Positions 23,998 to 59,476 of a stretch of 64,000 nt of DNA are shown piece after piece. A program made the translations under genes and the position numbers. The stretch spans positions 1,984,001 to 2,048,000 of the forward strand of contig JAMWBK010000002.1 in assembly GCA_029953675.1 (NCBI GenBank), read 5' to 3'. A model generated the notes under the pieces. It worked only from the letters and a program-made list of their open reading frames with translations, did not search any database and had not been told where the DNA came from. Origin of the DNA: Rhodosorus marinus CCMP1338 (Eukaryota > Plantae > Rhodophyta). How positions within the stretch are numbered: the first letter of the stretch is position 1; the number at the start of each line of letters is the position of its first letter.

Positions 23998-24037
23998 AAT
24001 CCGACTGGTTTCTGGAGAATCCGACTGGTTTCTGGAG
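23998..24037. repeat. Perfect 20-bp tandem duplication
   Basis: aatccgactggtttctggag occurs twice, at 23998-24017 and 24018-24037. Confidence 0.95.
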
Positions 24038-24541
24038 TATCAGACAGAACTCGTTACTCGAAAGACCAAACAGGGGCTCGTTAGTACCCTCCACACGAAA
24101 CCCAGAAACTCTCCAGCTCGACAGACACTCACGCGGAAGCGTTTGTAAAAGATGAATGATATGATTGATAAATACCTGGGGTCAGTCTACAAGACCCAAC
24201 GGCCTTCAACAAGTCTGCTCATCGCTCCAAAGCCCAGAGCTTCAATACCGCTCCAAAACATGGTTTTAGTACACGTAGTAAGATTGTACTTTTCAAGAAC
24301 ATGTACTAAGGTAAACAACGGATGGAGAATTGGAAACATCAGTAGAAGACCTTGGGGGAGGTGTGTAGCAGGTAGGGGAAGGTAGGAAGAGTCTATGAAA
24401 GCGCAGTAGAATGAGGTGTTATATATATATATATAGATTTGACTTGAAGAGGAATACGATGAGTATGTACAGAAACGTTGGGTTTTCCTGATAGTTTTGT
24501 TGTTTGGTTGCATTTTTTGTTGGCTTCTTTTGGTATTGAGG

Positions 24542-26675: not shown

Positions 26676-29600
26676 CTACAGTAGAATTCCACTAACTTCC
26701 CTGGAAGCCCCTGCCATGGACACCTCGTCAATGTCAGTGACTCTGCCATGCAAGGCATGGTCTTGCAGCACTTGGATTACAGATTCAGCACCCTGAAAGT
26801 CCTTCATCACCATGTCGCGAATCTCCGCTTTCACAGAGAGAGGATCGTAGTCATCAGCTACGAAGACGCGCATGGAGAGCACCTAAAGAACGGGACAGGA
26901 GGCAATAAGGTTCAGTTTCAACCGGAGGCAACATCACGTCATGTAGACAGACCTACCAGCTTCGAAGACGTGAGAGACCACAAATGTATGGAGTGAATGA
27001 GCACGACACCGGAGTGATTCTGAATCTTCTTTTTCAGATTCTTCAGAGCCGTGTCCTTGGCAACCGGTACTCTCAGGATTAAGCAGTCGGCAGAAAGGAT
27101 CATCGGTTGTACCGCAGACGCAAGTACGAACATTCCGACTAGCGCTGAGATCAAGCCGTCGGCCCAGTAAATCTCCAAAAACTAAAAAAACGAAGCAGCG
27201 AAGGACACTTAGCGTTTGCAATCGCAACAGCGTTGACCGCGAAGCTTACCCTTCTCAACGCCGTGGAAACGAAGAGTGACCCACTGGCGAGGGTGTTTGC
27301 CAGAATATGCAAGAAAGCGGTACGAATACTCAGATCCCTTCGATCGAGTGGAAAGAAGAGCAGCCCCAAGCAGTTGAAGCAACAACCGATTGCAGTGATA
27401 ACCAGAACTCGGTTCTCCTCAACTAAGGCCCCTTCGATGCTTCGCTCAACGCTTTCCAGGAACACCAGGATCCCGACAAAAACCAGTAGAACGCAGTTGA
27501 TAAAAGCGCATACTGGTTCTGTACGTTCGTATCCATAGGACAAGAACTCAGACGGACCTCTAGTATCCGCCAGCCTGGCACCAACAAGACTGATGAACAG
27601 GGCGCAACAGCATAACAGGGTGTCGGAACTGACAGTGAGAAGACCCAACGAGCTAGTGATGCTCCCGTACAAGGCCTCCACGAAAACCATGAGCGCCTGG
27701 AAAATCAGAAATGAAAAGAGCTGCCAGCTCTCGTGATCGTCCCTAGTTTCCTTTAAGTGGGCCCGCAGTTGTCGAAGAGATGAAGGAATGGAAACAATCA
27801 GAGCTTCCATTTCTCTGATCAGTGCCAGAAGCGAGCTTTCAAGGTCGAGTACGTCATGGTCCTGATGCGCTTCTCTAGCCAACGTCAACAAACCTAGTTC
27901 CACAACCAAAATCAGTCAGAGCGTCTCTTCATTAGCATCCCTGGGCAACGTACTAAGCATTGAATCCCTGCCGTGCAATGTTCTGGTCTTACCTAGAGCG
28001 TAGATAGGAAGGGCCACAACCAAAAAGAAGCTTACTCCACCGTCAGAACTGTACCCGAAGAAAAAGTCGCCAACCATCACCAAAAAAATTATTAGAAACC
28101 CTGCTGTGAGCTGCGAGATAGTTCGCGTCGCGCTGTAGCTTTCTACTTGGTAAGGAACGACCAGCAAAGTCAACGCTGCTACCAATGTCCACGGGGAGTA
28201 GAGGCTGTTGAAGACAGTTCCCCTCCATAGGCTGCTAATGACCACCAGCGGAAGTGAGAGGAGCCCTGCGGCGGCGAGCGATATTGAGCACTGCCATTTC
28301 TCGCTTCCCAAGACCTTACGAAGCTTTGCATCTGTCTTAAGCATCGCTTGGTGCGTCAGGCAGGCAGTTGCGACAGAACACACACCAAGGAACGGGAGAA
28401 AGCTGAAGCGATACGAGGCTCGGGGTATTGGGTTTTGATCAAGCTCTTCGGCATGGAGAACTGCCTCGATGGCCTCTTTCTCCATCTTTTCAATTCTCGC
28501 TTGCACATTGCCGTCCTCCGCCTCACGCTCCGTCTTCAATTCTTCCTTCGGCTCCTTCCCGTCTTGCGCAGATGCCCCCGTGCCGGACGCCGGGTGGTGT
28601 CGCGCTTCTGAGGCGACCGTCGTATTCTGATGAGTTGTATTTCGAGAATGTACTTCTCGAATCTCTATACGTCTGTTTTCGACGCCCGCCTTGGTTCGAT
28701 CCTCGTCCATATGCTTTCCACTACCCGTTTGCGAGGAGTTGCCCGGCAATTCCGCTCGCGCGTCCTTCTCTCCAGCAGGTTCTGGTTCAATAACCTTCCG
28801 TACCGGGTCCGCCGGTTTCTTTTCATCCCAAAGGCTTCCCTGTTCGTCCTCCTTTCTTCCGCTCTCGCCTTCTCGAAGCTTATGTTCCTCTTTCCCTCGA
28901 TCCATAGCAGGGTCAAGCGCCATTTGACCCTGCGGCCCTTTGTTCTCGTCGCCCCTAAGGCTGCCCGACTCGGCCCCTTCCTCCTGCGATTCGGGCTGAC
29001 GCTCTCTTTTTTCCTTCTCCATCGCCTTCTCTCCGTCCTGACCTTCCTTCACTAGCTCACTATTCCCACCATACTCTCCTACTTTCACCCTCCGTCGATT
29101 ATCGCCTACTTTCTTGTATTCATGTCGGCTATTCCGCTTGGACTCTATTCCTCCTTTGTTGCCCCCTTTTCTGTTCTTCTTCTCTTGTTCTTTGTCATCA
29201 TGGAGGCCCTTTGAATTTGAATCTATTCGCTCCTTGTCGTATCCTGTCCCGTTCTGCGCTTGCTCTCGTAGATCTTCCTTCTTCGCGCCTTTACCTGAAC
29301 GGATTCCTCTCTTGCCATCGTCAGAAATTTTTGTCGTTTTCTCTAATCTCTTCGAATTCATGTTCATGGACTTCGAATCCACCGGTTGTCCAGTTTTCCC
29401 TGCGGGCCTACTTCCGTTGGCCACTTTCTTGCCGGAGTTCACACCTGGGTTCGCTTGCTCGTCGCTATCTATGCTCAGCAGCTTTCTCCGAAGCCTGGGG
29501 ATTTTATTCCGCATCAGGTCAATGTTGTGTGACGTTTCCTTAAGCCGTGTTTTCACTCCAGAGACCATCCGCGTGTTAAGCTCCGAGCTTGGCAGGCCGA

Positions 29601-30174
29601 CCGATGCGTCCATGGCGACAAGGGTGTACGCCACGAGCATGAGCACGAGTCCCTGCTTCTTCCTCTTTGAAAGGGGTTTTCCTGTTGCTCCTCTGTTCAA
29701 CAAGTAAGATAGTGGAAGCTCTGCGCCTTCGATCATGAGGGTTCTCAGAGGGCCGAGTAACCGCAATCCGAAGCTCCACAGCAGCAGGACAGTCATATGG
29801 AGCGCGCCTGATTCTAAAATTTTGTACAAGACTCGCCGGGTTATCTTACGTGCTCTCCATGGTTTGTTGAGCGCGCAGAGAATTGCCGCAGCGGTTGAGA
29901 AGAGGGTAAAGACGACCCAGGGCAGTGGCTCGTTCGAAAGCAGATGAAAACAAAAGTAAACTGCGACAACGACAATAATCCGTGGAAGAATCTGTACACG
30001 ATGACGGAAGAAAACATAAAGTCAGTTATGTAATGGTCCTAAACGACTTATCCTGGCGCGTAGGCAGCTTACCTGGGACGGAAACCCATCCTGCAAACCA
30101 GCCTCGCGATTTCCAGGCAGATCAGCTCCCTGCAGCGATCCCACGGTCGCCCTTGGAAGCGCAAACCCTCGCAT
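26676..30174 (-). CDS. ZnT5/Msc2-like cation diffusion facilitator (N-terminal multi-TM domain + CDF domain)
   Basis: Exon 1 from ATG 30174 (MRGFALPRAT...FPSQ) splices to ILPRIIVVVAVYFCF... The CDF part has FVEALYG..SLGLL, SYGYERTE..AFIN, FLHILANTLAS, WADGLISAL and HSIHLWSLT. The stop is at 26678-26676. Confidence 0.85.
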
Positions 30175-33542: not shown

Positions 33543-35022
33543 TTACAATTTCGCTGCCGATGGCAATACTGCTCCATCATCAGCTGTTAAAATAATTTCT
33601 TCCAGGCACCTCACGAGTTCTCTTATGGAGCGAGCGACGTTATGGGAATGTACGGTGATCCTTATTCTCTCCGTGCCAGGGCTAACCGTCGGCGGGCGTA
33701 CGGCCATCACACGGAATCCCTTCAAGGCAAGCTGATCAGCAACCCAGACGCAAAACTCAGCTCCGACCACCGCAAGCGAGCAGATGTTCGTCGTGCCCAT
33801 GGGCGTCATCACCAGCGATCTTACAACTGGAGACGCATCTATCTCTGATCGGAGATACTCGCTCAGTGTAAATACGCGTGCCCGTTTCTCCCGAATCTCG
33901 GTGCTATCCATTGCTTCATACGCTCCCAGAATTGTCGCGAGTGAACTTTTCGGAAGCGCGCTTGAGAATATCAGCGGCCGTGCGTAGTTTAGGAGGTAGT
34001 CTCTCAGAAGCCTAGATCCCAACACAAATCCACCATGACAACCGAAAGCTTTCCCCAGAGATACGACTCTTGCGAGCAAGTTCGGATGGTTTTCGAAGCC
34101 ACGCTCGCAAACGTAGCCAGAGCCATTGCCTCCATACAGCCCGACGGTGTGTGCTTCGTCGATCACCACTGATACACGCCTTCCTCCAAATTCTATTCTT
34201 TTGAAGAGCCTCTTCAGCGGGACCAAATCGCCGTCCATGGAATAGAGCGACTCGACTACGATGATCACCTGGAGAACGACGGAGGGGTGCGGCTAGTTTG
34301 AGTAATGGTCGACGAAGCTCCGAGACAAGCTCAACGAGCGAAACCGAGCCGCAGGACGCTAGTTAAAGTGCCACGTGGGACTTCCGGGCGTACCGCGCCT
34401 GTGACTCTTTCCAGAGCGGCAGTGAGTTCCTTATGAAGGCTGTCCAGATCGTTGTGCCTGAACGCTTTAACATGTGAAGAGTTTGTGACTCGAGTGCCCT
34501 CGCGCGAGGAGGCGTGGCAACGCTCGTCCCAAAGGATTGCGTCGTCCTTGGAAGCGAGGCACCCCAGAAGGCCATGATTAGCGTTGAAGCCACTATTGAA
34601 CAGAACGGCAGATTCCGAGTTGTGGAACTTGGCTGCAAGTTCTTCCACATCCTCCGCTAGCTGGGAATTTCCGGTTACCAACCTCGATCCGGTGCTCCCG
34701 TTGACACATTGGTACCTGAGCCCAGAGATGATAATACGTAAAATCTGGGCCTCCCAAATACAAGCGGACGGCAGAATACTTCGGCGAGTGCTCCTTACCT
34801 CTCCAAGATCTTGCTCGCAGTTCCTCGAAGCATCTCGCTCCTCGCTAGCCCGAGGTAGTCATTTGAGCCGAAGTCATTCTCCAGACACGAGCTCTGCTCT
34901 AGCGTTAGCTGACGCACTAGCCCGCGTGACTTTCTAGACTCCAGTGCTTTCCTCATCTTTTTCGAAAGCAAGTCCTCTTCCGCACATGGATCTCGGCCTC
35001 GAATCTCCATTGCTTCCTCCAT
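33543..35022 (-). CDS. bioF: 8-amino-7-oxononanoate synthase (PLP-dependent, biotin synthesis) with C-terminal AKL
   Basis: DFGSNDYLGLA, FNSGFNANHG, DERCHAS, VESLYSMDGD, DEAHTVG, SLGKAFGCHGG, ARPLIFSSALP and RPPTVSPGTERIRIT. It ends ...PSAAKL*. Confidence 0.93.
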
Positions 35023-36727: not shown

Positions 36728-38342
36728 ATGGCGTTTGTAGGATCTGCACCGGGTGTGAAAGCCCGGACTGGTGTGAGAGGGTCTTGGTGTCGGCGTTGGG
36801 TAATGGCTGAGAAGTCTGCGGTTGCAGAGAAAGGGAGAGGTACAGCGAAGGACGTTTTTCTAGATAAGTTGCTTGATATTCGCGGACCTGTATCCCCTCT
36901 GGCAGAGTCTGTGAGAGAGAGCGGGGAGAGCGCGTTGCAGTTGGCCACTCCGCCAGGAGGAAAAACAGAGGAATGGCGATTCACGAATATAAATGAGCTG
37001 TATAAACAGGCGTTTGCGACTCCTGACAGCAATCAGGCCGAAAGCTCGACTGCCTACTTCTCAGACGAAGCCAGTGTTCGCGTTCTGTTCACCGACGGAG
37101 CCTTCAACGAGCAACTTTCTGACAACTTGACTAGTCTGGAAGGCGTGAAGATCGGCCGCTTGGGAGATTTCAGCAGCGATGAGGTTGAGCGCGTGTTGGG
37201 CGTGACAATGGGCAAGATTACTGGTACCGAAAAGGGCGGATTTTTCGCGCAGCTGAACGCTGCCTGCTCTACGGATGTGTTCGTGATCTCCGTTGGAGAT
37301 GATGTCGTTGTTGATAAGCCGGTCCAGTTGGTGTTTGGATCAAGTCAAGGCCCGGACGCCGAGGCTTTTGTAGTATCACATCCTCGAATTGTTGTGTTGA
37401 CCGGTCGCAGTTCATCGGTCTCTGTCGTTGAGCACCATGCCTCTGCTTCTCCTTCGTTTACGAACGTGTGTACATCTGCTTCTGTGGGAGATAACTCGAA
37501 GCTTAACTACTCCGTGATTAACGAGTCGAAAGAAGAAACCTATCAGATATCAACTGTTCAGCTTGATGCCGGACGGGACTCGACGGCCTCGCTACTCTCA
37601 GTGGGCGCTGGTGGACAGTTTTCGCGCACCACAGCATCTGTTGATCTAGTGGATACAGGCTCGCACGGAGAGATTCTCGGTTTGGGCCTTAGCATGGACA
37701 AGAGGATTGTTGATCTTACATCAGACATCATCCATTCATCTCCCCACTGCACTTCAAACCAGCTACAGAAAAACATCGCGACCGATCGTTCGCGTACCAT
37801 TTTCAGAGGCAAAGTCGTTGTGACGAGAGAAGGCAAGGGAACGGCATCTGAGCAGCTTTGCCGCTCACTTTTGTTGTCCAAGCGAGCCACGGTACGTACA
37901 AGCCCGGCTGCCCCAACAGGAGGTGTTGGATTTTTCTGAGGTTCTCACGAGAAGCTGTCGTTTTCTTGGAATTCCGTGGTTCAGGTGGACGCGATTCCTT
38001 CACTGGAAATTGATACGGATGATGTGCAGTGCTCGCATGGAGCGACTGTAGCGGATCTTGAGGAGGAGCAAATCTTCTACATTACTGCCCGGGGACTCAC
38101 CGTTGAGCAAGCCAGGTTCATGCTGATGCAGAGTTTTGTAGAAGAGGTTCTGCAGGTATGCTGTGGTCTGTGAATTTTACTCTCACCTGGTGCTGCTCAT
38201 GCTAATACCTCCACTGCGTTTTGTCTTGTGAAAGGCCGTTCCGCTGTCTGACTGCAAGGAGAGGGTGGTTGAGATTGTGAGGAGCATTCCGGCAACGCTC
38301 GACGACGACGGAGAGAAGAAAGGCCGTTTTATGTCTGTTTAA
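36728..38342 (+). CDS. sufD: Plastid Fe-S assembly protein SufD
   Basis: MAFVGSAPG transit peptide, EEWRFTN, SRTIFRGKVVV, SLLLSKRAT|VDAIPSLEIDTDDVQCSHGATV and IFYITARG. The last exon ends MSV* at 38340-38342. Confidence 0.93.
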
Positions 38343-40170: not shown

Positions 40171-42568
40171 ATGGAGGTGGTTGGAACCTCTGAGCCGGAG
40201 CAGGTATGCGCAGCATTCTTTGGTTTATTAGAATCGGGGCTAGTACGGGGAGCATCTACGACATCTGTTTTCAGACCGATCGTTTTGGTGTAGCTCATTA
40301 AAAACGACCGGCTGCTCTGCTTTTTGCTGACGTAGGGTTCTCCGAAGGTAGAAAAAGGTTTCGCGAACCCTGCATCTGATGCCCACCGATACATTATTCT
40401 AGTCTTAATGTACGCCAGTGAGTACCCGTAAATCTGGATTCAACTTCGACGGGATTCCAACCTGACTTTTCTCTTCTGCTCCTGGTTCTTGGGCTCAGCT
40501 GCATGGTAACGTTTGGTTCGTATTTCAGTTACGATGTTCCCGGGGCAACTGTTGCACAGCTGCTTGACCCCCGGCCAGATAACAAGATGCATATGACATC
40601 TCTGCAGTATAATCTCCTGTACTCCCTGTATGCATGGCCAAATGTTATCATCGTGTTCATTGGAGGCTACTTTATCGACCTGCTCGGAATCGCTATTACG
40701 GGAGTGGCGCTTATGAGCTTGGTGACCATTGGCCAAGTCATTATGACGGCTGGAGCCTTCGAGCACTCGATACGGCTTCTTTTTCTTGGAAGGCTGATTT
40801 TCGCCAGCGGAGCTGAGCTCTTAATTGTCTGTCAGGGGGCTATGATATTTAAGTGGTTTAATGGAAAGGAAATGGCTCTTGCGTTTGGGTTTTCTCTGAC
40901 TCTGGCGAGACTTGGAAGCATTCTCTGTTTTGCGTTCTTGCCTTCCGTGGCGGAGAACCATGGGATCCCTGCGGCTTTCGGACTGGGCTCGATATTCTGC
41001 ATGATCTCCTTTGTTGTGCTCGGCATCTTCCTGGTACTGGATAGTCGGGCGGACAGGGTCTTACAGAGAAACCAGGTTCAAGAGTCGTATGAGGAAACCA
41101 TTCAACCGCAAGGGTTGAGCGAGGCCTTCAAGTTGTCACCCAGCTTTTGGCTTTGTGTGAGTACTTTGATGACCAACTACGGTTGCCTGTATTCTTTTTT
41201 TGCGATTTCGATCGACTATATGCATCACGTGCTGGGTATGATATTTCTAGACCGGGCTGCACTGTCGGATATGGACGTGCAACAAAGCGGTTGACCCAAA
41301 ACGTCTCGTGCGCCAGGTCTCCCGAGTCAAGATGGCGGATACGAACTGACGCTGGTGTACAACATATCTATGGTTTTGGCCCCGATAGTTGGGGGAATCT
41401 TAGACGTCCAGGGAGGGCGAGGCTTGGTCACGTTTTTTGGCGCTGCGACAAGCGCAATTCTGTTCTGTTCTCTGAGGTAGGTTGAAGAGTACGCCTGTGA
41501 GCTTACGTCAGTATCTCGGCATCTTCCCCCTTGAAAAAGCACTTGTGGCTGAAATCCACTATGCCAACATGCTGACGTAGTTGGATGCCGCCGCTAGCAG
41601 CATCTGCAAAGCCTGCAATCTCAGTGGGAACCGCTATTGCGGTTGCTTGTGGTGAGTGGCTTGCACATCATACACGGGAATTTTGGAGTTTCTGTTAATT
41701 ATTCGTTGCGAGGGCTGTCGCGAAGGTATAAGCCTGGCGTCTCTGTCTTCTTCAGTTTGGCCGACTGTCCCTATTATCGTTCCCGCGCATCAAGTGGGCA
41801 TGGCGATTGGCGTCGCACAGTCCTTGCAGAACTTCGGAGTCGGCGTCTCGACGCTAGGGGTAGGGTACATTTACGACCAAAGCGGCTCCTACCACGCAGT
41901 CTTGACGTACCTGTCAGGCATCGCAGTATGCTCTGCAGTTCTTGGAGCCGCTTGGAATGTTTACGACAAGGCGACGGACGGTGTCGTGAACAGAATGGAT
42001 GTAGGAGTGTCTGCGGAAGAAACGATGCTTTTGGAGAAAAGTCAAAAGATAATGATGGTTGAGGTAAGAACATGAAATTAGGACCTCGGATTTTCTCGCA
42101 CGTTGAATGTGCGCTTACGGCAAGTTTTTGGAACGATTTGAAAAGGTTGCCCCAATGGCGGTCCTCGTTGTTCGTCGAAAATTCTACGAAGAAATCGGCG
42201 AGGGAGAAATAGGAATGAAAAGACGCGACTACTACAGGTCACTTGGGATCACTGATCTGGACGTTGCATCACATGACAAGTCCAGCTATGTGGACTTTGT
42301 TCCCCCCCTTCTGCAAAACCCGACCTCATCTGTGCTGGTGCCGGATGCGGTGGAGGAAGAGCGCGAACGGGAAGCGGAAAGTTCTCCTGATAAGCAAAAC
42401 TATGGGTCATCGTTGGGGAGCTCCATCGGTGGCCCCCCCGGCTCCAGCATTTCGCGAACGCGAGTCAGCCAATCCGGACCCGTCGAGTCCGGCCTTCGCG
42501 AAGCGCTTCTTGCCAAGACATTCAGGCTTCCGCTGTCATCGTCGGTCAGGGAGAAACAACAATTTTGA
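40171..42568 (+). CDS. MFSD1-like major facilitator transporter (lysosomal/vacuolar type), multi-exon
   Basis: HRYIILVL|CMVTFGSYFSYDVPG, YNLLYSLYAWPNVIIVFIGGYFIDLLG, GRLIFASGAE, WFNGKEMALAFG and later TM exons. The start and the last exon (to 42568) are less certain. Confidence 0.85.
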
Positions 42569-42762: not shown

Positions 42763-44452
42763 TCACGACTTTTCAGTGTTCCCTTGCTCAGTGTTGCCTT
42801 GCGCGGCTAGATTCCTCGGATGTGAATTCTGTTCAGGTTTCTGGGGAGGGGGGGGCGCGATCCGTTGAACAAATCCGGCGAGGACTGTGATGTCGTCTTC
42901 TTTCCCACCTCTGTATACCATCTGAAACTCATCCGACGCGGCGACTGAAAACGGAGTAGACTATTTGAAGTTGTCAAAGACAACGGTCAGTCGTCAGGCA
43001 TAGAATTACAGGCTAGGGAAATTGTAAGTCCATAGAGAACTATCAAACCTTACCTTGTTCTTGCTTTTGGAGTTTTCATATGCAGCATTCGCGAGTCGAA
43101 AGGAAACCTCTCGTACTTGTCCCTTTCTGTCACTGTTCAAGTTGGCGACGTCCTGCACAATAGACATTATTTCGGAGGTCGATACGTTGTCTAGCAGACC
43201 GTCTGAACCCATAATAATAAGATCGTGTTCCCGAATGTTCACTTGAGCAAGCTCCGCGTCGTCTGGGGAGCTGCTGTGGCTATGATGCCCCAACTGGTAA
43301 GGAAACCTTTGGCAACACGACAACAACACCACGCGAAATAGAGATCCCCTTAGTCTTGAACCTCAACTCAGTGTGATGGAACTCAATGAGGAGGGACAAC
43401 CGAACCGTGACGAAGGGAGAATCAACGTACCCAAACCTGTGCTCTTGCGGAGGAGTGTGGAAGATATCCTGCGGCCTGTTGAACGAATCCCATTCACCGA
43501 GCACTACAAACCCAGAATCGCCAAGGTTTGCACTTTTCAACAGCATCTCACCACTATCTAGGATTGCAATGCAGGCTGTGCAGCTGCCCTGAACTCGTTT
43601 CTCTTTGACTCTGGCATAGGACTCTCTGAGGACATCAAGCGCTTCCAACTTGCCGGTTTGGCCAACCTGAAGGACGGGAGAAAGATCCGGGCGGGGCAAG
43701 TCAGGACAGTAATCCTAGAACCCGACACATTCAATTACCCTATTGAGTTGAGCCCGCACCATTGTTATAATCTCCCTCGCGTTGCGCATGAGACAGCGGG
43801 AAAACTTTCCTGCGTCAATTCCACGCTCCCGCCACTGATATACACCGTCTGCGACGCCCATCGCGGGGTTTAAGCTATTAGATTCGACGGTAAAGAAGGC
43901 ATCCTCTCCAGCCCAGCCAAAGCCCTTCTTCAATACCGATTTCGTTCCCTCCAGAACTTTCTCTGAGTGTGGTATTGCGTATGAGGCTGTCACCAGCTGG
44001 AGGGCCTGTGACGAGGCAACTGTCGACCGAACACTCTTTTTAGCTTTGGCAACCTGGAACGGAGTCAACACCTGTACAAAATGCGAGCTGGTATCCCTTC
44101 CAATCCAATTACTGCAAAAGAACGGCCTTCCATTAACTTCAACCTTGTCCAGAAACCATCCAGTTGAATCTCCTCCTCTATCCGTCCCGATCACAATCGA
44201 CTGGATCTCGCCAAGATCATACGGCGCATCGATCACAAACCGATCAACCGAGTTCCTCTCAAACCTACCACCATACAAATACTGCTGATCGGTTTTATCC
44301 AAGTTACCCTTCAACGATACAAACACGTTCGCAGTAGTCCCAGCTCCACGCTTATTCCCAGTATATACACGAACTTCATACTCCAGCCACCTCTTCACCA
44401 CCCGAAAAGAATCTTTCAACCGGCCACGACCGCCCAACAACGATCGAAGCAT
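42763..44452 (-). CDS. PLAT/LH2 domain fused to a PTC7-type PP2C protein phosphatase, likely mitochondrial
   Basis: Presequence MLRSLLGGRGRLKDSFRVVKRWL. PLAT: YEVRVYTGNKRGAGTTANVFVSLKG..FERNSVDRF..DLGEI..WFLDKVEV. PP2C: GEDAFF, GVADGV, GSCTAC, ANLGDSGF, QEHRFG|FPYQLG, MGSDGLLDN and GGKEDDITV. TGA at 42765-42763. Confidence 0.9.
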
Positions 44453-49609: not shown

Positions 49610-51381
49610 ATGAGTTGTTTCGTGGGAGTTGGAATTCGATCGTTTTCTTCTGGTCGGGTTTGCCGGAGCAGTTTGGTGAGGATGGTGACTACTACTGCTG
49701 GTGTGATGGAACAGAGGGTTGAGGGATTTCCCAGGCATCTGTTGAAGGATCCGTCGTTGTTGAAGACTGAGAATTTTGTAGGAGGAGAGTTTGTTTCGGG
49801 GGATTCGGGCTCGTTTGCAGTTTTCAACCCGGCCACAAATGAGGAAATTGCGAGGGTTAGTAGTTTTGGGAAGGAGGAAACTCGGAAAGCTATCGAGGCT
49901 GCCAGCTTGAGCTTCATGAGCTGGAAGAAATCCACACCGTCAAATCGCAGCGACGTGCTTCGGAAATGGTATGAGGCAATTAACGAGAATGCAGAGGATC
50001 TGAGCGCTATCATGACCCTTGAACAAGGAAAGCCGCTAGCAGAAGCACTTGGAGAGGTAAGACCTGGACAGTACATTCACCGCAGCTCATGTCGGAACCT
50101 TGGAGCAGCACCTCGACTCGAATCGTTTTGCTTCGCTGAGCAGCAGGGTTTCACGCACTTTTGCAGGTACGGTACGGGGCTTCTTACGTAGATTGGTTCA
50201 GTGGCGAAGCTGTGAGGTCTAGCGGCGGATACATGGACTTGGACAACCGCAGGGCAATGTTGATCAGGCAACCGGTTGGAGTCTGCGCTGCTATAACTCC
50301 GTGGAATTTTCCTGTGGCGATGATCACGAGAAAGGCTGCTGCGGCGATTGCGGCTGGATGCACCTTTGTGGTCAAACCTGCCGAAGCCACACCGCTAACT
50401 GCGCTCGCGCTCGCCGAGCTCGCGAGACGTGCAGGTATCCCTGCCGGAGTGTTCAACGTCATCTGCGGTTCAAACCCTAAGGAGATTGGTTTAGAACTGT
50501 CAACCAACCCCAGTGTGAAGAAGATTACGTTCACTGGCTCCACAAATGTCGGCAAGATACTTCTGGAGCAGGTAGGCAGTCACCATTCTGGAAGAAGCAT
50601 GCGCTGAGAAGCTAACGGAGCTTCTGGTACCTCCCCGTTTCGCGTTCACTTGCAGTCTGCTTCAACGGTTAAGCGCGCGTGTATGGAGCTTGGAGGTCTT
50701 GCTCCTCTGATTGTTCTAGAAGACGCGGACTTGAAGAAGGCAGCGGTCCAGACGGTCGCAAACAAAACGCGCAACGGAGGTCAAACTTGCATCAGCGCGA
50801 ACCGAATCTTCGTCCACAAATCGGTCGCTGACAGTTTCGTCTCTGAACTGGAGGAGATCATGAAGCCGATGAAGGTCGGCAACGGAGTTGATTCTGGGGT
50901 TGTGGTTGGGCCCTTGATCAACGCTGCAGCAGTGGAGAAGGTTAAAAGTCATGTGGATGATGCTGTGAGCAAGGGTGCGGAGGTTGTCCTCGGGGGAAAA
51001 CATCTCACAGAATTGGGAGAGAACTTCTATGCCCCAACCATTCTAAAAAATGTGAGCATGGACAGCCTGTTCTGCTGTGAAGAAACGTTTGGCCCAGTCC
51101 TGGCGGTGATTCCCTTCGAAAACGAGGACGAAATTATTGAGCGAGCAAATGATACAGACTTTGGTTTGGCATCTTACGTATTCACTGAGTCGCTTTCCAA
51201 GGCAATGAGAATAGGGGAAGCACTGGAAAGCGGAATGGTCGGGATTAACTCAACAGCCTTGTCCGACGCCAGAGCGCCGTTCGGCGGGATCAAACAGAGC
51301 GGCATGGGAACCGAAGGAGGTCCCACTGGTATTCACGAGTACCAAAACTTGAAATACGTTTGCTTTGCAGCGGATTCCTAA
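49610..51381 (+). CDS. SSADH: Succinate-semialdehyde dehydrogenase (ALDH5/GabD family), multi-exon
   Basis: [52 protein letters not shown], catalytic [14 protein letters not shown] and [11 protein letters not shown]. Stop at 51379-51381. Confidence 0.95.
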
Positions 51382-56761: not shown

Positions 56762-57710
56762 ACTTGTCTTCCAGCGTGGAAACAACAACTTGTGCGTCCG
56801 ATCTCCTAGTCCTACAGCTTCCCACCTCTAGTTGAATGTTGTCAGAACTCTACCCCACGGGCGACGCGATTCGCCGCTACCTTCAAAAAACAAAATAGCT
56901 GGAACTCCGTCACGTCTGCTTCTACTTCAACTGTCCTACATTTGCCTGTACCAACACTCAGTAGTAGATCAGGTCGTCCGCAAGTCGTGGCTATATCTTC
57001 AGGAGAAACGCATCCTTCTCCGTGAGCAGATCAAACCGTTAGGCTTTCACCAAACGCCTCCCATCCTGAGTGAGTTGGGGAGGCTCAAGAAGAAGCGGAA
57101 GGATCGTACATCAATTTGCCTTCTTCATCAAGGATGGATGACTAGAATAACTTGCCACCATTGTTCATCACCTGTTCAGCTTGACAATGCGTGACACCTG
57201 AGTGCTCATCCTCTTAGCTCATGACTCTCGCGGGTTTATGAAGAAGCAACTCTGAGTTATTTTTCATAGATAAAGATGCCTTCTTAACGAACAGCCGCTT
57301 GATACTAGGGTTGTTTCAAATGGATCGTGACCTGTTCAGCTTCAACTGGCCATCTGCTTATCCTCCGCCACGTCGTTGATTGACCATCGAGAGCGACCAA
57401 AATGGATTCCATATTTCCCTTCACAAGTTTCCGAAATTCCGCTTTTCATTCACCACGGCAGTGATGTTGAGAAACGTGAGAGCTGAAGCGGCATTGGTAA
57501 GAGAAAGCTGGGAGTGGGCTTGCTTCTTGACTGAAGAGGTAGTTCTGGTTGAAGCAAGTGAGCATAAAGGCTGGCTACGGAAGGCTACAATAGCGTGGGA
57601 GAGACTTTCCACTCAGTGTGTGACAGGGTAGCTTTGAAGGTTGAGGGGTGAGACAGGGTTGAAATCTGCCTTCCCAGTAGGTGAGAGCTTTGTTTGCTAG
57701 TTTTTGTCAA

Positions 57711-59476
57711 ATGTCAACTCATGTCGATATGGAGCTGGGCTCCCGGTTTCCCGATCGACCGACTCGAACTATGGCAAGCGTTAGACTGGGAGAGACTTCG
57801 TCGCTCCTGCGCAGCCGTCGGGGATCGAGGATGAACTTTGGAGGTACAGAATTTGATGGAAGGAATCGTGGAGTTTTGGGTTCTGTGTTCACGAAACCCA
57901 AACCGAAGCGAGTGCATGAAGGCAATGTAGAACAACGGAGCTGGCTTTACGATACCCTCGACCCGAAATCGAACTCCGGTTCCGCGAAGTTTTACAAGTA
58001 TTCCATGAGCGCTCTAATTCTGCTGAACATGTTAGTATTCGTCATTGCTACGGACGATTCAATCAACGCCAAGTACTCCGGACTCTTCTACGTTGTTGAA
58101 GGCGTGACAAGCGTCCTGTTCCTTATCGACTATATCTGCCGGTTGATCGTCATTACTGAGCATAAACACTTCAGTGATCCTGTTTGGGGAAGGTATGCAA
58201 CCAGCGACGAGGTCACGGTGACGCTTCAGAGATCCTGGTTTCTATCAGACCAGACACAGATACTGAAGAAAACTACATTCTCCCTTGGCAGGATCCGCTA
58301 TTTGTTCACGCCGATCGCCGTTGTCGATGCCATATCAACGTTTCCGTTCTTCATCGAGATCATCTTCAGCACCAATTTGCCCCTAACAACTCCTCTAAGG
58401 CTGTTCCGGCTTACGCGAATTCTCAAAACGGAAACGGTTTCAGATGCTATATCATCCGCATGGAGAGTCATGGTTTTCAACAAGGACATCCTCGTCGTGG
58501 CGTTGATTCTGTGCTTAATTCTTACCCTTATCACTTCGACGTTACTATACTATTTTCAACCGCAACACAAGGGCCACCAGGAATTCGAGAGCATTCCCGC
58601 AACCATCTTCCTGTCTGTTCTCATGCTTACTGGTCAGGGTGGGCCGGACGGTGACCTGCCGTGGTATACGAAAGTACGTCAAAGCAGCAAGAACCTCAAC
58701 CAACTTCTAGAACCCATTACAGGGAAAGTCTCCAGTCTAACAGATCCGTGTTCACTCCGATGAACCACAGATGATAGTCATGATGACAGCAATATTTTCA
58801 GTAGCAATGTTCGCGATTCCAGCGTCAATGTTGACATGGGGCTTCGAGGTAAGACGATCTCGCGCCTGTTCAAGACTTCTAGGGACGCAGAGTACTGAGA
58901 ATGCCTTCGGCGTTTACCTGTTAGGCTGAAGCCGAGAGGCTCGCTAAGAGGAGCCACGAAATGAAGAAAAAGGAAGCAAAAATCAGTCAAGGGCTGCTCC
59001 CACCGGAAGAAGCAAGCAGCGACAGCGACGACGATTTTGGAAGATGGTTCTTTAGGGGAGAGCCTACATCCGACGAGGAAGAGTGGGATGAGTATGCAAA
59101 TGTTATCCTTGGATCATCCGACGGATCCGAGGATGGGGGGGGGGAAGGAGATCTATCTGTCAAGATTCCTGCGACAGTGGAAGAGTTTAGGGTCCTTCAG
59201 AAAGCCAAGGATCTGCTAATGAGCTTGAACCTGGAAACGCCATCATACGAAGGGATCGAGGAAGTGAAATCATTGGCCCGAGAAATCCAGAGCGACAACG
59301 CTGCTCAGGCAGCTTCAACCGCACCGATTGCACAGATTCAAGCTGAGCTGGCGGAAGCGCGTGCCGATATTTCTGCCCTACGCACGAGCATAGAAGCACT
59401 AACGGCCCAACTGCAGAACCAGAATCCCGACCCCAGCAGACCCCTTTTTAACGTTGACGAGGGCCTTGAAGCGTAG
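57711..59476 (+). CDS. 6TM voltage-sensor cation channel (Kv-like topology) with a non-canonical TGQGG filter
   Basis: S1-S3 helices, S4 RLFRLTRILK, pore FESIPATIFLSVLMLTGQGGPDGDLPWYTK and S6 IVMMTAIFSVAMFAIPASMLTWGFE. An acidic linker and coiled-coil tail follow. TAG at 59474-59476. Confidence 0.88.

Follow-up and report, generated by a model that had tools for sequence, protein, structure and literature searches.

Within a 64-kb window of red-algal DNA (the whole stretch that was analysed; positions are counted from its first nucleotide), we found a gene whose product joins an N-terminal PLAT/LH2 domain to a protein phosphatase domain of the PP2C7 class. It belongs to the nuclear genome of a Rhodosorus-like red alga (Stylonematophyceae). 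The best explanation for its product, to which we give about half of our confidence, is an active and probably mitochondrial PP2C7 phosphatase that uses PLAT as a fixed docking or regulatory module. PLAT would be a permanent part of this enzyme, packed rigidly on the catalytic domain as in lipoxygenase, and would most likely dock the phosphatase within the organelle, either to a protein partner or to the surface of a membrane, which would limit dephosphorylation to nearby phosphoproteins. An Arg-rich leader would most likely direct mitochondrial import and be removed just before PLAT. The docking role, the mitochondrial location and the rigid packing are parts of this explanation that we infer.

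The fusion of the two domains could be read directly from the gene. As an earlier note on this DNA had claimed, PLAT and the beginning of the phosphatase lie in one continuous exon: exon 1 is an uninterrupted open reading frame (ORF), and a transcript-derived protein of Rhodosorus marinus (P0001) agrees with it. Because the phosphatase motifs GEDAFF (43909-43892) and GVADGV (43858-43841) share this exon with PLAT, the fusion is independent of any splice. The ORF listing shows a 249-codon open frame at 44464-43715 on the minus strand; the ATG at 44452 is the first in-frame ATG past an upstream stop, and translation ends with the TGA at 42765-42763. In the final splice model, four exons encode a product of 459 amino acids. 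P0001 is 95% identical to the window protein and has the same MLRSLLGG start. It reads ...REIITM|VGQTGK..., without the seven residues VRAQLNR, which places the donor of intron 1 at ATG|GTGCGG (43759), 21 nt upstream of a GTAATT donor at the end of the open frame. Thus, the protein has 459 and not 466 amino acids. With the GTGCGG donor, the segment from NAR to LDVL has 14 residues, the same as in another relative (P0003), and a 466-residue model using the GTAATT donor was rejected on comparison with P0001 and P0003. A further sequence from the R. marinus transcriptome (P0002) is the P0001 transcript keeping introns 2 and 3, which shows both that the introns are real and that a close relative transcribes the locus.

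Two side observations concern splicing. The end of exon 1 (43739-43759, minus strand) holds two in-frame GT donors 21 nt apart, GTGCGG and GTAATT. With the latter in use, a helix of PP2C would gain the residues VRAQLNR within it. The P0002 transcript would encode a frameshifted, truncated phosphatase without motifs 8 and 11, and represents either intron retention or unprocessed RNA.

The catalytic domain is C-terminal (residues 150-428 of 459) and is followed by a disordered tail of 31 residues. It starts with the motif PH(S/P)xK, with GEDA at 43909-43898 and DG at 43849-43844. To judge its conservation we used an alignment of 76 PLAT-bearing homologues (A1) and the PP2C motif numbering of Kerk et al. 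(2015; PMC4524716). Motifs 1, 2, 5, 8 and 11 had invariant Asp residues (D184, D202, D281, D345/D349 and D416/D417) in all 76 homologues; the metal-binding Asp motifs, reported as retained in the earlier note, are therefore all present. N350 and the PP2C7-type residues E306..G310.P312.Q314.G316 (EHRFGFPYQLG) were also invariant in A1, and P161, H162 and K165 of the PP2C7 entry motif (P161-H162-x-x-K165) were at least 90% conserved. The Pfam profile PF00481 scored 29.7 bits against a cutoff of 20.3, with just its C-terminal part matched (residues 341-399), and the matches to the PP2C_2 and SpoIIE profiles were under their cutoffs.

The alpha-beta-beta-alpha sandwich of the PP2C fold was found in the AlphaFold2 model and in its Foldseek matches. 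The best match of the catalytic part in the PDB was 6ae9, the photosystem II core phosphatase PBCP, both by sequence (E=2e-22) and by Foldseek (E=8.5e-20, template modelling (TM) score 0.87 on the target, root mean square deviation (rmsd) 2.6 Å, 30% identity). In both the sequence and the fold searches of the PDB, this match was far ahead of the ABI1/HAB1-type PP2Cs; lower Foldseek matches included the bacterial PstP, tPphA, SpoIIE, RsbU and RsbX. Kerk et al. (2015; PMC4524716) based their definition of the PP2C7 class on yeast Ptc7 and human PPTC7. Membership of the window protein in this PP2C7/PTC7 class, also proposed in the earlier note, was supported indirectly by its homologues Q01BE9 (P0093) and A9UVZ4, which both belong to the PP2C7 set of that study, by the PBCP match and by the Joint Genome Institute (JGI), which labels many of the homologues 'protein phosphatase PTC7'. 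Judged by its invariant Asp residues, the phosphatase looks catalytically intact, and it would be of the Mn2+/Mg2+-dependent Ser/Thr type.

The PLAT domain is complete, as previously claimed: the Pfam profile PF01477 (E=3.1e-19, 70.3 bits against a cutoff of 23) was matched over positions 1-109 of 117 and covered 44380-44087, compared with about 44380-44065 in the earlier note. Its sequence matches in the PDB were polycystin-1 (E=5e-11) and 5-lipoxygenase (5-LOX; E=1.4e-8), and Foldseek superposed it on the PLAT of 5-LOX with an rmsd of 2.3 Å across about 112 columns. In the AlphaFold2 model, the PLAT strands comprise residues 23-31, 43-49, 69-76, 83-90, 99-106 and 109-117, with a predicted local distance difference test (pLDDT) score of about 95. 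Positions T31, R35, A37, G38, F64, R66, W99, L101, F111, W116 and G118 were conserved, with W99, W116 and G118 invariant in A1, and by sequence comparison these are generic fold motifs, as in polycystin-1 and 5-LOX. The fold and the core motifs TG..RGAGT, F.R.S, GW.L..V.V and W.G are shared with the PLATs of polycystin-1, of 5-LOX and coral 8R-LOX, and of LOXHD1-like proteins, and PLAT-repeat proteins have 35-45% per-domain identity to the window PLAT, which however is joined to a phosphatase and not to a lipid-handling enzyme or a channel. An exhaustive search with PLAT only returned 2015 matches, with mostly multi-PLAT repeat proteins in the top ranks. This search was unusable for counting PLAT-PP2C proteins; it indicated that the window PLAT is canonical, with P0011 and P0003 as close single-PLAT relatives. 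In the linker between the two domains, L129 was at least 90% conserved in A1.

The architecture proved to be widespread. A full-length search yielded 204 significant proteins among the candidates scored, and hidden Markov models built from A1 were run on the best 120. PLAT was N-terminal to PP2C in 103 of these 120 relatives (PLAT complete, or in partial gene models). The sources were mostly green algae and included Trebouxia, Myrmecia, Chlorella, Micractinium, Haematococcus, Dunaliella, Edaphochlamys, Chlamydomonas sp. UWO241, Monoraphidium, Picochlorum, Pedinophyceae, Chloropicon, Pyramimonas, Cymbomonas, Prasinococcus and Ostreococcus, as well as the labyrinthulid Hondaea. The Ostreococcus tauri protein Q01BE9 (P0093) was among the direct matches (33% identity), and A9UVZ4 of Monosiga brevicollis was colinear with the window protein over PLAT, linker and PP2C (31% identity, E=5e-46). 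The colinearity of the family extends to the linker strand and the PH(P/S)xK entry motif. As 103 of 120 relatives and a choanoflagellate protein share the fusion, it appears to be old and kept by selection. No PLAT-PP2C7 protein was seen from land plants in the lists of relatives examined.

The architecture has also been described before. PLAT was named among the rare accessory domains of PP2C7 proteins, and PLAT with PP2C was tabulated for Chlamydomonas Cre01.g036200, Volvox D8U5M4, Ostreococcus tauri Q01BE9 and Monosiga A9UVZ4, the last with an added C-terminal LIM domain beyond the PLAT-PP2C7 order (Kerk et al., 2015; PMC4524716, supplementary table). The statement in the earlier note that no described example was known thus no longer holds. 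That note had also considered that the architecture might be already common and characterised: common it is, whereas our literature searches turned up no functional study. The tabulated proteins resemble the window protein in their order (leader, PLAT, linker and C-terminal PP2C7) and in the invariant residues. On the other hand, the leader of the window protein is much shorter (23 residues versus 40-185 in most complete green-algal models), and the green-algal motif after PLAT, W.G.SD.G...GP.ERNL.P, is reduced to WIGRD...VLTP. Cyanidioschyzon (C. merolae), the sole red alga in that set, had no PLAT (PMC4524716). Thus, the architecture is common and catalogued, and the red-algal member seems to be the one new point.

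A second genomic locus also supports the fusion. On a 6.5-kb Logan contig (L001), the source of the relative P0011, tblastn with the window protein recovered orthologous exons, and the first exon of L001 also joins PLAT to the start of PP2C (residues 20-232, 53% identity). In a rough neighbour-joining tree of the PP2C columns, which lacks support values and was built in part on incomplete sequences, the window protein, the R. marinus protein and P0269 formed their own clade outside the green-algal cluster. This tree, as weak evidence, gave no sign of a recent green-to-red transfer. The possibility of an artefact, either a merger of two adjacent genes or an ORF that arose by chance, has next to no probability in view of the single exon over both domains, the transcript-derived proteins, the orthologous locus on L001 and the colinear homologues in many lineages.

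We also considered how the two domains are arranged. AlphaFold2, run with A1, gave the window protein a mean pLDDT of 88.6 and a predicted TM score (pTM) of 0.82, and low confidence was limited to residues 1-17, two short stretches of the linker and the tail from about residue 430. For a Myrmecia orthologue (P0013, 37% identical), the values were 93.1 and 0.85, respectively. Since pTM is scaled to full length, a PP2C of 279 residues placed alone caps at about 0.64. Both values exceed this limit, which argues that PLAT is confidently positioned relative to PP2C. From pTM only, we infer a rigid packing of PLAT against the catalytic domain in the predicted structures. The pTM values, together with the conserved linker strand and the entry motif, point to an enzyme with two fixed domains, like the lipoxygenases. 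No PDB match, whether by fold or by sequence, spanned both domains.

A fixed arrangement might also serve regulation within the molecule. Here PLAT would be an intramolecular allosteric regulator on the switch or flap of PP2C and would determine metal affinity or the access of substrates until displaced by a ligand or partner, perhaps in analogy with the regulatory domains at the N-termini of bacterial RsbU/SpoIIE-type PP2Cs. This is the main alternative to docking, and we regard both the regulator and the analogy as tentative possibilities. The high pTM of both models implies that the contact between the domains is fixed, the strand in the linker is conserved, and structures of SpoIIE and RsbU were among the fold matches. 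It has been suggested that the PP2C7s are derived from bacterial Group II (RsbX/SpoIIE-like) PP2Cs, and the corresponding table annotates PLAT with 'sequestered substrate access' (Kerk et al., 2015; PMC4524716). However, PLAT domains are elsewhere established as modules for binding, not as switches, and this counts against allostery. It should be noted that the allosteric and docking roles are compatible and not mutually exclusive.

Another alternative takes PLAT as a Ca2+-triggered module for membrane translocation, as in 5-LOX, which would recruit the enzyme to the membrane of an organelle upon a rise in Ca2+. We consider it unlikely. The domain is homologous to the PLATs of 5-LOX and coral 8R-LOX, and green-algal orthologues have an acidic loop (for example, GDEEENGFERGS) between strands 3 and 4; however, this acidic loop is not conserved family-wide, and the same loop in the Rhodosorus protein is YGGRFERNS, short and not acidic. 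The loops of wild-type 5-LOX carry Ca2+ ligands and the Trp and Phe residues for membrane insertion. In the window PLAT, GNKRGAGT forms the beta1-beta2 loop, where wild-type 5-LOX has its insertion Trp/Phe, and only YGGR precedes F64 in the other loop; neither loop has aromatic or acidic clusters in the alignment, which was made to the engineered Stable-5-LOX only. Both loops resemble those of the loop-trimmed Stable-5-LOX rather than the wild-type loops. Neither the 5-LOX-type Ca2+ loop nor the hydrophobic insertion residues are evident, the net charge is slightly negative, and a 5-LOX-like Ca2+ switch would appear to be absent from the window PLAT. The recruitment by Ca2+ or to membranes that had been proposed in the earlier note is thus without sequence support, the loops being short or polar and PLAT slightly acidic across the family.

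With regard to location, the leader, called a presequence in the earlier note, is indeed short, basic and presequence-like, with a high helical hydrophobic moment and pLDDT below 50 at residues 1-17. Similar short Arg-rich leaders were present in the red-algal relatives P0269 and P0011. Mitochondrial targeting is the consensus prediction for Cre01.g036200 of Chlamydomonas and A9UVZ4 of Monosiga (Kerk et al., 2015; PMC4524716), and yeast Ptc7 and mouse PPTC7 are mitochondrial, which is consistent with the leader of the window protein. The likeness to Ptc7 and PPTC7 is one of class (Kerk et al., 2015; PMC4524716), with a C-terminal catalytic domain in common; in contrast with the window protein, both are single-domain enzymes without PLAT. 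Their substrates reported in the literature (Coq7 and BNIP3/NIX) are not transferable to it. Based on these comparisons, mitochondria are most likely the location of the window protein.

A plastid phosphatase working like PBCP would be a different solution, and we find it quite improbable. PBCP (rice 6ae9; Arabidopsis At2g30170) has the closest solved catalytic domain, with the same motif set including FxxPYQL, and chloroplast targeting is predicted for some green-algal orthologues. However, PBCP is the sole structure of the PP2C7 class in the PDB, and the leader of the window protein has no early Phe. An early Phe is typical of many red-algal transit peptides, and phosphorylation of photosystem II core N-termini, as it occurs in green plants, is not known from red algae. 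For Chlamydomonas, we take Cr6g257850 to be the PBCP orthologue. This protein is a separate PP2C7 entry without PLAT beside the PLAT-bearing Cr1g036200, and it is listed ahead of the heading of the At2g30170 plant group, while the PLAT-bearing proteins stand under 'Assemblage B, associated green algae' (PMC4524716). They are thus outside the At2g30170/PBCP group, and by this classification the window protein is not an orthologue of that group; unlike the window protein, PBCP has no PLAT; it is targeted to the chloroplast and belongs to another PP2C7 assemblage (PMC4524716).

It is also conceivable, but highly improbable, that PLAT is cleaved off after import, with an ordinary single-domain PTC7 as the mature enzyme. 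Termini aside, confidence in the AlphaFold2 model is lowest in the linker (residues 121-150), which might suit a cleavage site. A folded domain of 100 residues that is conserved in more than 100 orthologues, is confidently placed and is followed by a conserved strand in the linker is unlike a cleavable presequence.

Several observations weigh against the explanation that we prefer, a mitochondrial phosphatase with PLAT as a fixed docking or regulatory module. First, the two AlphaFold2 runs share most of their alignment and are hence not independent, and a rigidly packed PLAT is equally consistent with an allosteric regulator as with a docking module. Second, no conserved basic face and no obvious exposed aromatics were seen in the alignment of the PLAT family. 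The net charge of PLAT is -2 in the window protein, the family median is -2.5, and 56 of the 76 members are negative; an acidic PLAT without obvious exposed aromatics argues against direct binding to anionic membranes. Third, the leader has just 23 residues, and the targeting predictions for the Ostreococcus and Volvox entries are unclear or chloroplast (Kerk et al., 2015; PMC4524716). Finally, we found no functional study of any PLAT-PP2C7 protein in the literature, where Kerk et al. (2015; PMC4524716) was the one relevant paper; in papers on Tetraselmis and on cilia, the joint mention was a coincidence.

The positions of the gene, its exons and introns, and the parts of its product are listed in Table 1. 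The C-terminal tail shows substitutions and indels relative to the 95%-identical R. marinus protein, and is thus fast-evolving and of low complexity.

Table 1. Parts of the PLAT-PP2C7 gene and of its product in the 64-kb window
Feature	Position	Strand	Basis or remarks
Whole PLAT-PP2C7 gene, start to stop codon	42763..44452	-	Sequence, splice model, 95% identity to P0001
Exon 1, residues 1-231: leader, PLAT, linker, PP2C motifs 1 and 2 (GEDA, DGV)	43760..44452	-	Continuous ORF; donor set by P0001 and by P0003 segment length
Intron 1, 93 nt, GT..AG	43667..43759	-	Splice model and P0001
Exon 2: PP2C core including motif 5 GDSG (D281 at 43519-43517)	43431..43666	-	
Intron 2, 124 nt, GT..AG	43307..43430	-	Retained in isoform P0002
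Exon 3: PP2C7 signature FGFPYQLGHH and motif 8 SDGLLDN (D345 at 43203-43201)	43054..43306	-	
Intron 3, 93 nt, GT..AG	42961..43053	-	Retained in isoform P0002
Exon 4: motif 11 GGKEDDITV (D416-D417 at 42897-42892), disordered tail, TGA stop	42763..42960	-	
N-terminal leader, residues 1-23 (MLRSLLGGRGRLKDSFRVVKRWL)	44384..44452	-	7 K/R, 1 D/E, amphipathic; putative mitochondrial presequence
PLAT/LH2 beta-sandwich, residues 25-122	44087..44380	-	Pfam PF01477, PDB matches, AlphaFold2
PLAT-PP2C linker, residues 123-149	44006..44086	-	Holds conserved short strand VLTP
PP2C7-class catalytic domain, residues 150-428, over four exons	42859..44005	-	Pfam PF00481, PDB 6ae9, invariant residues
C-terminal tail, Pro/Gln-rich, residues 429-459 (APPPPQKPEQNSHPRNLAAQGNTEQGNTEKS)	42766-42858	-	Disordered, pLDDT below 60

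Around this gene, the window holds several others. A gene for an MFS transporter (Pfam MFS_1, E=2e-21) lies at 40503-42075 on the plus strand, tail-to-tail with the PLAT-PP2C gene. A convergent MFS gene was also found on L001 (4177-5950, minus strand; 52-54% protein identity). Since L001 holds the same convergent pair, the two genes are syntenic in a second, more distant and presumably red-algal genome. Gene context was nevertheless dropped as functional evidence: this is a eukaryotic nuclear locus, and its neighbours (MFS, SufBD and aldehyde dehydrogenase) carry no information of the operon type. A 403-residue ORF at 36728-37939 (plus strand) carries SufBD core and SufBD_N domains (E=2e-44) and probably represents a nuclear gene whose product takes part in the Fe-S cluster assembly system of the plastid. 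Exon-sized ORFs of ordinary nuclear genes matched aldehyde dehydrogenase (50650-51381, plus strand, E=5e-84), an Ion_trans channel (57681-58763, plus strand, E=6e-10) and a class I/II aminotransferase (33543-34268, minus strand, E=8e-23). The longest ORF of the window (27916-29829, minus strand, 637 residues, TTG-started as listed) had no Pfam match at E<=0.001. No tRNA genes and no Rfam families at gathering score were found in the 64-kb window, and its one tandem repeat (23998-24045) is trivial.

In yeast and mammals, phosphatases of the PTC7 class govern mitophagy and the synthesis of coenzyme Q, and in plants the repair of photosystem II, and their targeting and regulation are mostly unexplained. 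The conserved and apparently rigid PLAT sets apart a subfamily that carries its own module for targeting or regulation. The architecture is neither rare nor undescribed, but it is functionally unstudied, and the Chlamydomonas orthologue makes the subfamily readily studied. The red-algal copy widens the known range and, together with the choanoflagellate copy, argues that the architecture is old. A more far-reaching and rather doubtful idea is that of an ancient mitochondrial PLAT-PP2C7 lineage, spanning red and green algae, labyrinthulids and choanoflagellates, in which the rigid PLAT would be an allosteric or membrane-sensing switch. If this is true, the lineage would represent a regulated organellar phosphatase without a studied counterpart, and its substrates would open algal mitochondrial phospho-signalling.

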